A DNA stretch of 64,000 nt from Oculina patagonica (GCF_052425735.1 NC_135759.1:32798001-32862000), one strand, 5' to 3'; numbered from the stretch's first letter, positions 49,189 to 59,522 are shown. Notes: generated from the sequence alone by a model not told the origin. A program made the numbers and translations.

Positions 49189-49258
49189 ATGGTGTTCCCA
49201 GGTGCTCCACTGTTGGCTGTGCTTTTGATTTTGAGCAATTTCGCTTCTTTGGCTGAAG
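49189..49258 (+). CDS. Copy 2 exon 1, signal peptide (MVFPGAPLLAVLLILSNFASLAE/G)
   Basis: ATG, hydrophobic core, GAAG/GTaagg donor, phase 1 fits the next exon. Confidence 0.85.
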
Positions 49259-49494
49259 GTAAGGCCGTGATTTATATTCTGAACAGAAGTTTTATTTGAA
49301 CTGCTTGAATTAAAGGAAGATTCCGGCCGTAGGAGATTCGATTTGATCGTAATTTTCAAAGCTTTCAAAAGTCGCCAAGACGAATTTCAGTTACAATGCT
49401 GCAATTAAAAATGTGTACGGAGCACAACGTCTTACCTCTGCTATGTAACAAGGTAGTACATGCATTTGAACACAATATTTTATTTTTATTTCAG

Positions 49495-49853
49495 GACAAG
49501 ATCTGGTCCAAACTGGAAAGGTCAACTTCACGGTGGCATATCCAGACCTGCTTTATTGCACAACCGTGCAATACGCTCGTACATTTTCTAGCTCTAGAAA
49601 TGTACGTGTCCTCGCATCCATCAGCCATGGAAAGGAATCTGCCAGTGTTCATGATTCAGCAGTTGTGTGGACGTCAGACGTAACACAGAGCAGTTTCCGT
49701 GTGTGTGTGTTGGAGTCGGGACTTGGTACAAATGGATCCTCTATCGTGAACTGGATTGCGTTTAGAGGCACGCCCAGTGGAATGCTGGACGGCACCGCCT
49801 CCTTCAGCACATTCACCAGCGGGACAAAATGTGAAAGTGTTAACTTTGCACAG
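49495..49853 (+). CDS. Copy 2 exon 2, H-type-lectin-like repeat 1
   Basis: GQDLVQTGKVNF...VVWTSDVTQSSFRVCV...VNWIAF...; 359 nt, phase 1-0. Confidence 0.9.
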
Positions 49854-51196
49854 GTATGGCTGTAATAAATCGTACCGGTATATGTGGAAATTTTTCAGTG
49901 GTAATGAAACAAGAAATTTATAACTATTTATAAGAAAATGCCATTTTCTTGCAAACGCCATTGCCGATTTTATTTTATGAAAATATATTGCGTGAGTCGA
50001 ATAATTCCAAAGAGGCAACAGAAAGCAAGGAAAGTGTTCCACTGTAAACTACAATCAAAGAAGAAACGACTGATTCGATGTAAGACAACAGTAGCTGCAA
50101 AGTTTTCTAGTTACGTCTGGCGGCTAAATATCCAAGTAGAAGAACACAGCATATTGACGAACGTTAGCTATTTCGGGAACGAAAAACAATCACATTATCA
50201 GCAGAAAATTTCAAGAGGTTTGGAGAGTCAGTTGTTGTAGTTTGTCGTGAAAATTTGCGAAAGAAATATGTTTATCAGTTGTCATGTTTAAAGTGCTTTT
50301 GAAAGTCGACTGCATGAACTTGGAAATGATTAAGTGAGATTCTAAGAGTTTTCGAATACAATATAGGTCAGTTTCAAAAATATTTTACTTTCGAAATTTA
50401 TGCTTGAATTATTGCACCCAGTTTAAATCGAAGAGGCCGTGATTCTTGGGACCACTTTGGCTCAGTGAAGGAGTTCAGGTTCTTTTGAACTTTGGTTGAT
50501 CGATATCTGTTGGCTTTTTGTTATTGTACATATCAAGTTGATTTCATCTCCCTTCTCGACGATGGGTTGTGTCATATCATTGTCAGACCACTGACCGGCA
50601 ACTTTGACAATGTTGTGAGAGAATTCAGTAATAAGAGGACTAAAAAACAAACAAAAGAAAAACAACAGCAAAAACTGAGGTCAATTTGTTGAACCAACTC
50701 CACACAGTCGAGTATTTTTTTCCTTTGGTTGTTAATCGCGCGCATGATTAGTGTGTTGGATGTCTTTCTCTCACAGGCAAAATGGAAAAGAATACAAGAC
50801 TATATTTTTAGTCCTCCTTAAAATCGGATTTCAAAAGAAAAAAGGACACGTTTTTCGTTTTCTATATTTAACCAGTGCGGGCAAGGGCACACATTAAACT
50901 CGACTTAACATGTTTGGCTATTGAATGGTAGAAAAACAATCTGAAGATGAAAGCAAAACAGAATACGCTTTGCATGTCAAAAAGTCTGTTGATGATGTGT
51001 CATTAAGTTGTAAGTCTTCGCCTCCTCGTTAAATGTCCTGCTGTGTTTCTAAATCTACGCATTATCTTTACCGGTGACAGATAATCGTTTTGTTTTCTTA
51101 GCATTGATAGCGATAAACTTGTCTAATTGCTCTGCAGTTTGCTACTGTGTGGTAAATCCGAGTAAATCTAAACAAATTCTTCGTTGTCCTTTGCAG

Positions 51197-51361
51197 CGTT
51201 TTTCTTCTGTTCCAAACGTTCTCGCCACAGTACGTCACTCAGTCAGAAATAAGCCACAGGACGCCATGAATATCTGGATAGAAGAGTTAAAGGAAGATTA
51301 TTTCAGAATTTGCCTTCGAGAAGTGAAAACATTTGACGGCAAGCACCTGAATTTACAAGTG
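51197..51361 (+). CDS. Copy 2 exon 3, H-type-lectin-like repeat 2
   Basis: RFSSVPNVLATVRH...IWIEELKEDYFRICLRE; 165 nt. Confidence 0.9.
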
Positions 51362-51821
51362 GTAAGTTTACAAAGAAAACTTTCTATAATATCATTTACT
51401 TGTGAAAAGTTTTCATTGGAACCTATTAGCAGCGCTATTAAGGAAGTCAGATACACAATGCGATAAAAATAATCTGCGCATTTTTTTTTTTTTTAAAAGG
51501 TTATAGCTGCTGTTACTGTTGCTGGTACAGTAAGCTGTGCGTGACCGTTTGTGTTGACATTGTTACAGACGATAACACGAAGGATCTGAAAGGCATGATT
51601 GTATCGAGCAGTATTGTCCATTCTTATGAAGAAAAAGAGTTCGAACCCTTTAACAGTTTATATCTTTGCTTTTTTTGGCTAAGTTATACTTCTTAGCATT
51701 TCGTCATACATTTTATGCAATTCTTCATTTGTTCATTTCTTCGTGACGGGATAATAATCAATAAGAGCAAAAAAATGCCAGGCAAAAATTAATAATAAAA
51801 ATATTAAGCAATCAGTCTCAG

Positions 51822-57461: not shown

Positions 57462-58093
57462 GTCAGATATTATTTATTCTTATAGTAACTACGTGCGATG
57501 TAAATTGAAGTACAGTAACCCATAACTTTTCCGCAGTATTCATAAAATTTGTGAGAGGAGGTACATGTAAGATTGCGGAAAATCACAAATGGAATGTACT
57601 CAAAGGTAAAGGTGATTCAGAAAACTGAAAGGTTCAAGCGAAAAATTTATTCCGTAGATAGTAACGAAGTGCAAAGCGCTGCAATTGTAATGTTAAATGA
57701 CACCATTTTATTTTTCTTTGTCATTAATAATGCTGCTTTTTAATCATATGTTTTGATTCCGTTCCTTTTAACTAACTGTATGAGGCACGAATAGTTCAAT
57801 ATTTAATTCTCGACTTCTTAATCAAACCGATGGGCAACTGACCGCCAAATTCTTCTTTGCGGTGCATTGGCGAAATTTGACCAGACCTGTACAAATTTAC
57901 GCTACCCACTACCCCAGTGCAGCTAATTTGTCACGACCAACAATTTTCCGAATAGTCACGAGCTTTTTTGGTTAGCTTCGGCCAAACTCCCTCAGCGCAA
58001 TCAAGAACAAAAGGACTATTGTTTTGTGCTTATTGGGAAAAGTTGAGCCACAAGAATAGACTATTTCTTGATACGTATCTTCTTTCCTTGCAG

Positions 58094-58184
58094 TATATAA
58101 ACAAGACTGGCTTTAGAGCATGCGTGAAGGAGCTGTTTGTGAACCAGCATGACCCTCTGTCAGTCTCATATGCAGTCATGCCAG
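58094..58184 (+). CDS. Copy 2 exon 12
   Basis: 91 nt, YINKTGFRACVKE...AVMP. Confidence 0.88.
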
Positions 58185-58767
58185 GTGGGATGTAAAGAAA
58201 TGATAAATGTTATGTAAAAAGTAATTTATTTTGTTCCGCTAAGCCTGGTTTGCTTATATGACGCATGCACAAGGATATAAGCATAAACACGAAACAGGTT
58301 ATTGCATTCCGAACGCAGACATAAACGCAAGCACAAGAAAAGGAAACCGTGTAACGAAAAATAACGAAAGCCCAACAATTTCTTTATCGATCCTATCGAC
58401 AGCTTCCACAGACTGGTTTACAGGTACAACGTGAACAAAACAAACTTTAATGTCACCGCGACTTCGCTTGCATGTATCTCCTAACGCTTATGCATGTCGC
58501 ACCTGTAAACACTCTTTAAAATAGCTTATACTTGCACTTATTCGTATGCTTGCATTGTACAATTAAACCAGATCTTCGACTTGGCTAAAGTTTGATGAAC
58601 TCGATCTTGCATTTTTCTGACCATGTTACCTACCTAGAAAAGAACAGCTTTGTAATTCATGTAAAAAAAGAGAGACTTTCTTTGGCAGTGATTAATAGTT
58701 CTATAAACATTTCAGGGTAACTTCAACATAAAGCTTTATTTTACATTTTCACTTTATTTTTACAAAG

Positions 58768-59142
58768 ATGTGTGTGAGCCGGGCTGGAGTTTCTACAATG
58801 GCTCCTGTTACTTCACCAGTGAAACATGTAAGACATGGTCCAACGCCAGTACAATCTGCAGAAGCATGGGAGCTAATTTACCCGCTATTGAAAGTCAGGA
58901 AGAGAACGTGTATATTCAGCACAGACACAATGGTGACAAGGCGTGGATTGGTTTGAATGACATTGCAACAGAAGGATTATTCTCCTGGGTGGATGGATGT
59001 CCTGATAAATTCCGCTACTGGGCGGAGAAGCAACCGAACGACTTTAGGGGAGAGGACTGTGTACACACACTTGGTGCTAGACATGGATATATGTGGAATG
59101 ACGTAGATTGCTCGGCATGCCACCGGTTTACCTGCAAAAAAG
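58768..59142 (+). CDS. Copy 2 exon 13, intact C-type lectin domain
   Basis: WIGLND, QPN, EDC, WND motifs; 375 nt, phase 1-1. Confidence 0.94.
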
Positions 59143-59411
59143 GTGTTAAACAGTTTTCATGATCACAAGTTACGTAAATCATGTTTCTAGTAAAAAGGAA
59201 TCTTAACTACGCAGGGAAGAAAAAGGCAGTCTGGATAGTTGAAGGGCAGGATAAAGGAAACATTACTGCTTTATTTTTTGCATCTCTTACATCACAGAAC
59301 ATCTGGCTCCATCGTGTGTTCCATGATTACATTGAATATTATACCATTTGATAGCCATTTTTTATTTAATAACCTTGAATCTAATTAACCACAAAATTTG
59401 TCTGTTCACAG

Positions 59412-59522
59412 ATTATGACGAATGTACCAGTACTCCGTGTTTGAATGGAGGTACTTGCAAAAATGGTAAAAGGACGTTTAGCTGCATATGTCCACCAACT
59501 CACAAAGAAAGTTCATGTGAAG
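59412..59522 (+). CDS. Copy 2 exon 14, EGF-like
   Basis: [37 protein letters not shown]; 111 nt. Confidence 0.92.

Follow-up and report, generated by a model that had tools for sequence, protein, structure and literature searches.

Helix pomatia agglutinin (HPA), an H-type lectin, is a single domain of ~100 residues that forms a non-covalent trimer, and these trimers are disulfide-linked into a hexamer. Another H-type lectin, SLL-2 of the cnidarian Sinularia lochmodes, acts on Symbiodiniaceae. In the soft coral Xenia, a protein named LePin was described that carries a signal peptide together with H-type and C-type lectin as well as Kazal domains (Hu et al., Nature 2020, PMC7332420). In experiments with RNA interference and antibodies, LePin proved to be a secreted protein that binds algae and promotes the formation of alga-containing cells, and LePin-like proteins occur across anthozoans (10.1101/2022.12.13.520278). 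The family is described as conserved in this group, and stony corals have multiple paralogs. LePin is among the few coral proteins with functional evidence in the uptake of symbiotic algae. Later preprints reported multiple LePin paralogs in the alga-engulfing cells of Stylophora and varied architectures in Palythoa. In this study, a stretch of 64,000 nucleotides of the Oculina patagonica genome (contig C2:32798001-32862000, hereafter the window) was analyzed, and a lectin gene at window positions 49189-59522, which we call copy 2, was characterized. This locus is itself an ordinary member of the already described LePin family. A first-pass annotation of the window, made from the sequence alone, had counted an already characterised family with this architecture among the grounds that would refute it, and this ground applies, since the published LePin family has the same architecture. 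Its proposal of a candidate for symbiont or microbe recognition named the right role for the family, as known from Xenia LePin, though this role had already been described. We consider it likely that copy 2 is an intact, spliced member of this anthozoan family of secreted mosaic lectins, with two compact three-repeat modules and the same role as Xenia LePin.

The gene model was rebuilt from the raw sequence. Copy 2 consists of 14 spliced exons on the plus strand, which form an open frame of 832 codons with neither stop nor frameshift, and all of the splice borders are canonical AG/GT. Exon 1 (49189-49258) begins with the ATG at 49189, encodes a signal peptide (amino acids 1-23) and ends in phase 1 at a GT donor after 49258. 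The first repeat block is spread over five exons. Exon 2 (49495-49853, 359 nt, AG/GT-bounded and in frame) encodes H-type repeat 1 and the leader strand of repeat 2, exon 3 (51197-51361, 165 nt) the core of repeat 2, exon 4 (53371-53478, 108 nt) its last strand and the leader of repeat 3, exon 5 (53626-53751, 126 nt) the first part of repeat 3, and exon 6 (54220-54316, 97 nt), which ends in phase 1, the last part. A follistatin-type Kazal domain follows in exon 7 (54894-55112, 219 nt, phase 1-1). The second block has the same structure, with H-type repeat 4 and the leader of repeat 5 in exon 8 (55348-55727, 380 nt), the core of repeat 5 in exon 9 (56141-56308, 168 nt), its last strand and the leader of repeat 6 in exon 10 (57030-57140, 111 nt), and the first and last parts of repeat 6 in exon 11 (57345-57461, 117 nt) and exon 12 (58094-58184, 91 nt, ending in phase 1). 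Exon 13 (58768-59142, 375 nt, phase 1-1) carries a C-type lectin domain (CTLD), and exon 14 (59412-59522, 111 nt, phase 1-1) an EGF domain with a GT donor after 59522.

For two of the short exons several candidates had to be compared. Four open 108-nt stretches with an AG acceptor could serve as exon 4, and 53371-53478 was the only one that combined a pyrimidine-rich acceptor, a GT donor and the motif DWLAF; two of the others had GC donors, and the remaining GT-bounded candidate looked non-coding. Likewise, three open 111-nt candidates with an AG acceptor were found for exon 10. The expected motif DWLAF occurred together with a pyrimidine-rich acceptor in 57030-57140 alone. Of the other two, 57051-57161 is bounded by GT as well, and 57073-57183 carries a GC donor. 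At the 3′ end, the donor of exon 14 is open in phase 1 and lies 48 nt upstream of an assembly gap of 500 N (59571-60070), which was left unfilled. Should splicing not use this donor, the frame would reach a stop after 13 more codons, at 59561-59563. In addition, intron 3 contains a 92-nt inverted repeat (51881-51972 and 53131-53222). Its arms are 96% complementary and separated by 1158 nt, a weaker outer pair accompanies them, and the element is probably a transposon with terminal inverted repeats.

The exon lengths of the two blocks were 359/165/108/126/97 nt and 380/168/111/117/91 nt, and their phases were alike, with phase 0 at all four junctions inside a block and phase 1 at either block end. 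This layout was an exact match to the one reported in the first-pass annotation. Judged from their sequences, the six repeats are genuine internal homologs. Each of them contains exactly two cysteines, and the cross-block tblastn matches had E values of 1e-8 to 6e-11, with 1e-8 for exon 2 against exon 8. When repeat 4 alone was used as the query, it found six stretches within P0001 (KAL9984804.1), the gene model of the neighbouring paralog, copy 1, which is 93% identical to copy 2. Repeats 2 and 5 were 40% identical, as were repeats 3 and 6, and the remaining pairs ranged from 20 to 34%. The intron positions are unlike among the repeats of one block and identical between the two blocks, which indicated that a whole three-repeat module was duplicated after the intron pattern had been set, as had been suggested before. 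Moreover, the Kazal, CTLD and EGF exons and the repeat blocks are all phase 1-1, so that each module is symmetric and can be shuffled without breaking the frame.

The domain content was then established with Pfam on the exon translations. Kazal_2 (41.5 bits) and Kazal_1 (31 bits) matched exon 7, Lectin_C (74.2 bits) matched exon 13, and EGF (31.9 bits) matched exon 14. Together with the frame, these matches confirmed the predicted order of signal peptide, three repeats, follistatin/Kazal exon, three repeats, CTLD and EGF. In the CTLD translation QPN, EDC and WND occur in the expected order, which makes the residue set of calcium site 2 complete; as QPN is a variant triplet, the sugar specificity of this domain is not readable from it. 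The first 23 amino acids formed the sole Kyte-Doolittle window above 1.6 in the 832 amino acids, which by hydropathy points to a signal peptide and no transmembrane segment.

Hu et al. defined LePin-like proteins by the domain set H_lectin, Kazal, C-type lectin and EGF and by sequence homology to Xenia LePin along 60% or more of the length. Kazal_2, Lectin_C and EGF were found on the exons of copy 2 and H_lectin on the paralog P0001 (68 bits), so that the domain set is complete. Three published 15-residue peptides of Xenia LePin aligned colinearly at amino acids 587-601, 620-634 and 789-803, with 6-8 of the 15 residues identical, and none of 500 shuffles was as good; this comparison covers the three peptides and not the full length. 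The first two peptides fall in exon 10 and exon 11 (repeat 6), and the third spans the CTLD/EGF junction. Copy 2 resembles Xenia LePin in being of the secreted type and in its domain set, and its membership of the LePin family is demonstrated by these results. It differs in that it is a scleractinian paralog within a large expansion, and its algal binding and its expression in alga-hosting cells would follow by analogy to Xenia. Another difference is that close paralogs of copy 2 add two EGF domains and a fibrinogen-related end. In the published LePin descriptions that we found, there was no mention of six repeats, a 3+3 layout, a pseudo-trimer or a fold model.

To assign the repeats, full-length paralog proteins were scored with Pfam H_lectin (PF09458, curated cutoff 24 bits) in place of single exons, since introns split the domains and leave single-exon scores below threshold; exon 5 and exon 9, for instance, reached 13.1 and 15.4 bits as pieces alone. 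The score of 68 bits was obtained on the whole of P0001. Among the single repeats of this protein, repeat 2 (26.3 bits) and repeat 5 (27.8 bits) passed the cutoff, while repeat 1 (14.2 bits), repeat 3 (14.4 bits) and repeat 6 (18.7 bits) stayed below it and repeat 4 had no H_lectin match. Because only the middle repeat of each block passes, database diagrams show about two H-type domains and under-count the repeats. A pooled profile of the six repeats from 17 homologs matched four PDB sequences at E values up to 10, all of them Helix agglutinins (E 0.01-0.017). A profile of the whole triplet found no matches among PDB sequences, and repeat-type-specific profiles did no better.

The fold was examined with an AlphaFold2 model of triplet 2, which was built from 119 aligned homologs with P0001:382-670, the corresponding block of copy 1, as the first row. 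Its mean predicted local distance difference test score (pLDDT) was 87.1, and each repeat had six strands. In a domain-level VIA structure search of 48,161 chains, which is independent of Foldseek, HPA (2ccv) matched with Z 7.5 and a root-mean-square deviation (rmsd) of 2.4 Å over 84 of 99 residues. Also among the top five chains were discoidin I (2w94, Z 7.2) and SLL-2 (3wmp, Z 7.2, 86 of 94 residues), and the remainder of the top eight were phage tailspike and pyocin fibre domains. The matches to HPA, discoidin I and SLL-2 fell on repeat 5, repeat 4 matched phage tailspike domains (Z 7.3), and repeat 6 was barely sampled. On the basis of the Pfam scores, the profile matches to PDB and the fold matches, the H-type assignment of the repeats is sound and their homology to H-type lectins is demonstrated, in agreement with the identity claimed in the first-pass annotation.

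Compared with these known lectins, the repeats share the six-stranded sandwich of HPA (2CCV) and Helix aspersa agglutinin, the sole PDB sequence matches of the repeat profile, but copy 2 has three divergent domains fused within one chain, and W83 and Y89 of HPA are not conserved. SLL-2 (3WMP) is likewise a cnidarian lectin with the same fold, but it is a single-domain oligomeric protein without Kazal, CTLD or EGF domains and is only 16% identical. The discoidins I and II of Dictyostelium (2W94, 2VME) matched in their H-type domain and have an inter-domain sugar site in the trimer. In contrast to copy 2, they are cytosolic non-covalent homotrimers that carry a discoidin domain at the N-terminus, and their W235 and Y241 have no aromatic counterpart in copy 2.

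How the three repeats of a block are arranged was judged from predicted structures. The predicted template modelling score (pTM) of triplet 2 was 0.89, which is high for a three-domain chain. When the whole 289-residue triplet model was compared with the AlphaFold DB, template modelling (TM) scores of 0.98 on a Stylophora relative (87% identity) and 0.82 on a protein of 28% identity were obtained, followed by 0.80 and 0.77 on a protein with a Kazal-like domain and one with a spondin domain (19% identity). H-type modules of ~260 residues matched at TM 0.6-0.68. These modules occur joined to peptidases, tyrosinase, SCP, FN3 and phage-tail proteins, and their carriers look bacterial or archaeal by protein name. 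Triplet 1 matched the same set of AlphaFold DB models as triplet 2, with rmsd values of 3.8-4.3 Å. Based on these models, three H-type domains set in a fixed arrangement within a single chain would be a unit that recurs well beyond corals, and such triple units appear to be widespread but sparsely described.

These models predict that each triplet is one compact unit rather than beads on a string, and we regard it as fairly probable that each is an intramolecular pseudo-trimer. The compact triplet proposed in the first-pass annotation is thereby supported as a prediction, by the pTM of 0.89 and the recurrence of the arrangement in the AlphaFold DB. Most tandem lectin domains of mosaic proteins do behave as independent beads without any intramolecular trimer, and the triplet arrangement is known from predicted models alone; yet such a high pTM for a three-domain chain, and the appearance of the same arrangement in independent models down to 13-19% identity, make independent beads very unlikely here. 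A Foldseek search of the whole triplet against the PDB placed the C-terminal domain of PCSK9 and APC-beta domains on top and found nothing at E ≤ 0.001. Searching with the entire chain does not detect lectins of a single domain, for which the domain-level search was needed. All solved chains that aligned along the full triplet model were single-chain or monomeric pseudo-trimers; in the VIA search these were adiponectin, the C1q head and herpesvirus dUTPases (Z 3.7-4.6). The likeness to the single-chain pseudo-trimers of PCSK9, perforin-like APC-beta and monomeric herpesvirus dUTPase lies in the arrangement, aligned over the whole triplet; their folds and functions are unrelated and the scores weak (TM up to 0.34, Z up to 4.8). 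By analogy to these proteins, an ancestral trimer may have become one chain. No paper on tandem or pseudo-trimeric H-type lectin domains was found in the searchable literature, in which the pseudo-trimer interpretation appears to be unreported.

A further claim of the first-pass annotation, that the two triplets form a fixed 3+3 hexamer within one chain, was not supported. The 647-residue AlphaFold2 model of both triplets and the Kazal domain had a pLDDT of 87.2 but a pTM of only 0.71. This pTM is above what would be expected for freely hinged lobes, and on that ground a true single-chain hexamer, in which the triplets would stand back to back as the paired trimers of HPA do, was considered. 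We judge it very improbable, since AlphaFold DB models of relatives with both triplets superposed on one triplet at a time (TM 0.43-0.44, rmsd 19 Å) and a well-folded Kazal domain of 72 residues lies between the triplets. The complex prediction for triplet 1 against triplet 2 gave 0.34, compared to 0.41 for an unrelated control, and was used neither way. According to these models, the triplets are probably two separate heads on a well-folded, highly conserved Kazal connector with no fixed 3+3 body.

The sugar pocket of the repeats was compared with that of known H-type lectins. In discoidin the sugar site lies between adjacent H-type domains of the trimer, and mutation of W235/Y241 abolished binding in a recent study. 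These residues correspond to the pocket aromatics W83 and Y89 of HPA, and in the profile alignment, which is weak (E 0.01), both aligned to non-aromatic consensus positions of the repeats. Thus, neither the binding of galactose or N-acetylgalactosamine nor the sugar specificity is inferable from HPA. In repeats 2 and 5, a conserved F/Y and an H stand two to three positions off the aromatic sites, and at the position of the pocket the loops contain a motif that is particular to the family and strongly conserved, with R, E, L, Q, N, G and H nearly invariant. From the alignment, a modified H-type pocket using the displaced F/Y and H may be compatible with these loops.

It could be argued that the H-type repeats have kept the fold and lost sugar binding, so as to serve as a rigid scaffold or protein platform, and that the CTLD alone, joined in the paralogs by the fibrinogen-like end, reads glycans. 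The unmatched pocket aromatics, the four repeats that score under the Pfam threshold and the full QPN/EDC/WND set of the CTLD are in line with this view. However, the near-invariant loop motif at the pocket position of repeats 2 and 5 points to a conserved site and not to decay, and the ratio of the proportions of non-synonymous and synonymous differences (pN/pS) over the repeat exons of block 2 was 0.09-0.25. We therefore think a pure scaffold role unlikely.

Selection on the gene was evaluated by comparing copy 1 and copy 2. With a pS of 0.24 and a pN of 0.029, the ratio was 0.12, and the Kazal exon alone had 8 synonymous and 0 non-synonymous differences. This demonstrated that the proteins are under purifying selection, and diversifying selection between the tandem copies was ruled out by the same ratio. 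As for transcription, a spliced contig from a public run, which has the same organism code as the other runs of the species, joined exons 10, 11 and 12 at the exact predicted borders. A second public-run contig led from exon 7 into an exon-8-like sequence. The few mismatches in the spliced contig mean that its source may be a paralog; it shows transcription of copy 2 or a close paralog.

Several observations weigh against the interpretation of copy 2 as a working LePin with two compact heads. The comparison with Xenia LePin is limited to three 15-residue peptides, four of the six repeats lie below the Pfam H_lectin threshold, the aromatics of the canonical galactose/N-acetylgalactosamine pocket have no aromatic counterparts, and the PDB matches over the whole triplet model are weak. 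The 3′ end is an open donor running toward the assembly gap. In addition, three poly-A runs had zero reads on 54700-59600 (these runs were flagged as no test), and no database gene model matched copy 2 exactly, the nearest being paralogs of 92-94% identity.

The last of these points would also suit a truncated, silent duplicate that is becoming a pseudogene, with only neighbours such as LOC144644227 being functional. The poly-A runs without reads and the missing exact gene model fit this explanation, as do the frameshift in neighbouring copy 1 and the lack of any EGF2, EGF3 or fibrinogen-like exon between copy 2 and the next paralog. On the other hand, all 832 codons and 14 exons are intact with canonical splice sites, pN/pS against copy 1 is 0.12, and a member of the cluster, P0174 (887 amino acids), likewise lacks the fibrinogen end; and the runs without reads were no test. 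We consider a decaying duplicate distinctly unlikely, and an intact LePin remains the preferred interpretation of copy 2.

For copy 2, the following mechanism can be proposed. Each three-repeat module would fold as one compact body of three six-stranded sandwiches, the predicted covalent counterpart of the non-covalent trimer in HPA, discoidin and SLL-2. Several binding faces would thus be carried on a single chain with no need for oligomerisation. By analogy to Xenia LePin, the secreted protein would use its lectin modules to coat the surfaces of algae or microbes, and the coated cells would be handed on to phagocytic receptors that gastrodermal cells carry. If the pseudo-trimers exist, two in one chain and with non-canonical pockets, they would provide concrete modules for expression, glycan arrays and mutation, and would also explain why Pfam-based diagrams under-count the repeats. 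Resting on models, the pseudo-trimer amounts to a testable and apparently unreported structural prediction for the whole LePin family.

The scale of the family was investigated by searching the 529-Mb Oculina patagonica assembly, in which match counts are a lower bound. With exon 8 (repeat 4) as the query, at least 150 genome matches were found, of which about 90 were full length, with identities of 44-97%. The full-length homologs lay in tandem clusters on contigs C9, C4, C1, C2, C5 and C6. Homologous proteins share the chassis through the CTLD and EGF domains and then differ at the C-terminal end, which may be fibrinogen-related, uromodulin D8C, CUB plus SRCR, TLDc, F5/8-C, olfactomedin, pentraxin, immunoglobulin or fibrillar-collagen C-terminal. 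This variety fits shuffling, because the modules are phase 1-1. Outside Cnidaria, four stretches of a sponge protein (P0063, Oscarella pearsei transcript, 1103 amino acids) matched the repeat-4 exon, and this protein contains H_lectin, EGF and two C-type lectin domains. By sequence likeness, a related chassis may predate Cnidaria.

Taken together, a wider proposal can be put forward, to which we give slightly less than even weight. All LePin-family lectins would carry two covalent pseudo-trimeric H-type heads, of which the middle repeat alone is visible to Pfam and each of which has three non-equivalent, non-canonical sites, so that one chain would reach the multivalency that classical H-type lectins get only by oligomerising. 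In Oculina patagonica, this chassis of phase 1-1 modules would have been copied about 90 times and joined to varied C-terminal recognition domains, giving a combinatorial repertoire for algae and microbes. Being a facultative symbiont host, Oculina patagonica is suited to the question of symbiont versus microbe recognition. Its large, tandem, domain-shuffled LePin-like set is a natural place to sort the copies that respond to symbionts from those that respond to microbes.

On its contig, copy 2 belongs to a tandem array of at least five paralogs. The 3′ two thirds of copy 1 were located by tblastn at 375-7713 on the plus strand, and its 5′ exons lie upstream of the window. The part within the window contains the end of repeat 3, the Kazal domain, repeats 4-6, a frameshifted CTLD and three EGF exons. 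The CTLD exon of copy 1 (4736-5115) has a 4-bp deletion at ~4925 relative to copy 2, and the resulting frameshift means that KAL9984804.1 ends in a nonsense, wrong-frame read-through to 805 amino acids. In view of the pN/pS of 0.12 between the copies, this lesion is recent, polymorphic or an assembly error. The downstream paralog LOC144644227 (P0292, 1150 amino acids) starts at about window coordinate 67240, and past its first EGF it continues with two more EGF domains and a fibrinogen-related end. For copy 2, no EGF2, EGF3 or fibrinogen-like exon was found from 60071 to ~67240, the assembly gap excepted. Of the three lectin folds that had been claimed in the first-pass annotation, copy 2 as assembled therefore has two.

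A fibrinogen-related C-terminal exon with a stop does exist in the window, at 42118-42795 on the plus strand. It is an open frame that lies upstream of copy 2 and is no part of it, and its owner gene is uncertain. Its coding part (42118-42792) scored 18.6 bits against Pfam Fibrinogen_C (cutoff 22), with the N-terminal part alone matched, and shared 59% identity with the fibrinogen-like end of paralog P0177. In the ESM Atlas, the cluster closest to it was a cnidarian "Fibrinogen C-terminal domain-containing protein". No PDB sequence, intelectins included, matched it. With this result and the sub-cutoff Pfam score, the intelectin-like end that had been proposed was not confirmed, and the exon was kept as divergent fibrinogen-related.

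An EGF2/EGF3 exon pair occurs twice in the window, at 6666-6776 plus 7600-7713 and at 24062-24172 plus 26671-26781, with 17-19 kb between the two occurrences. This second pair, together with the fibrinogen-like exons (38897-39088 and 42118-42792), may be what is left of one more partial gene copy, or may belong to copy 1 as far-off exons behind introns full of transposons. Between the lectin copies there are also two long open frames on the plus strand, 29290-30000 and 35421-37274, which are reverse-transcriptase-like, as in a non-LTR (long terminal repeat) retrotransposon, and are located in a stretch with strong AT skew.

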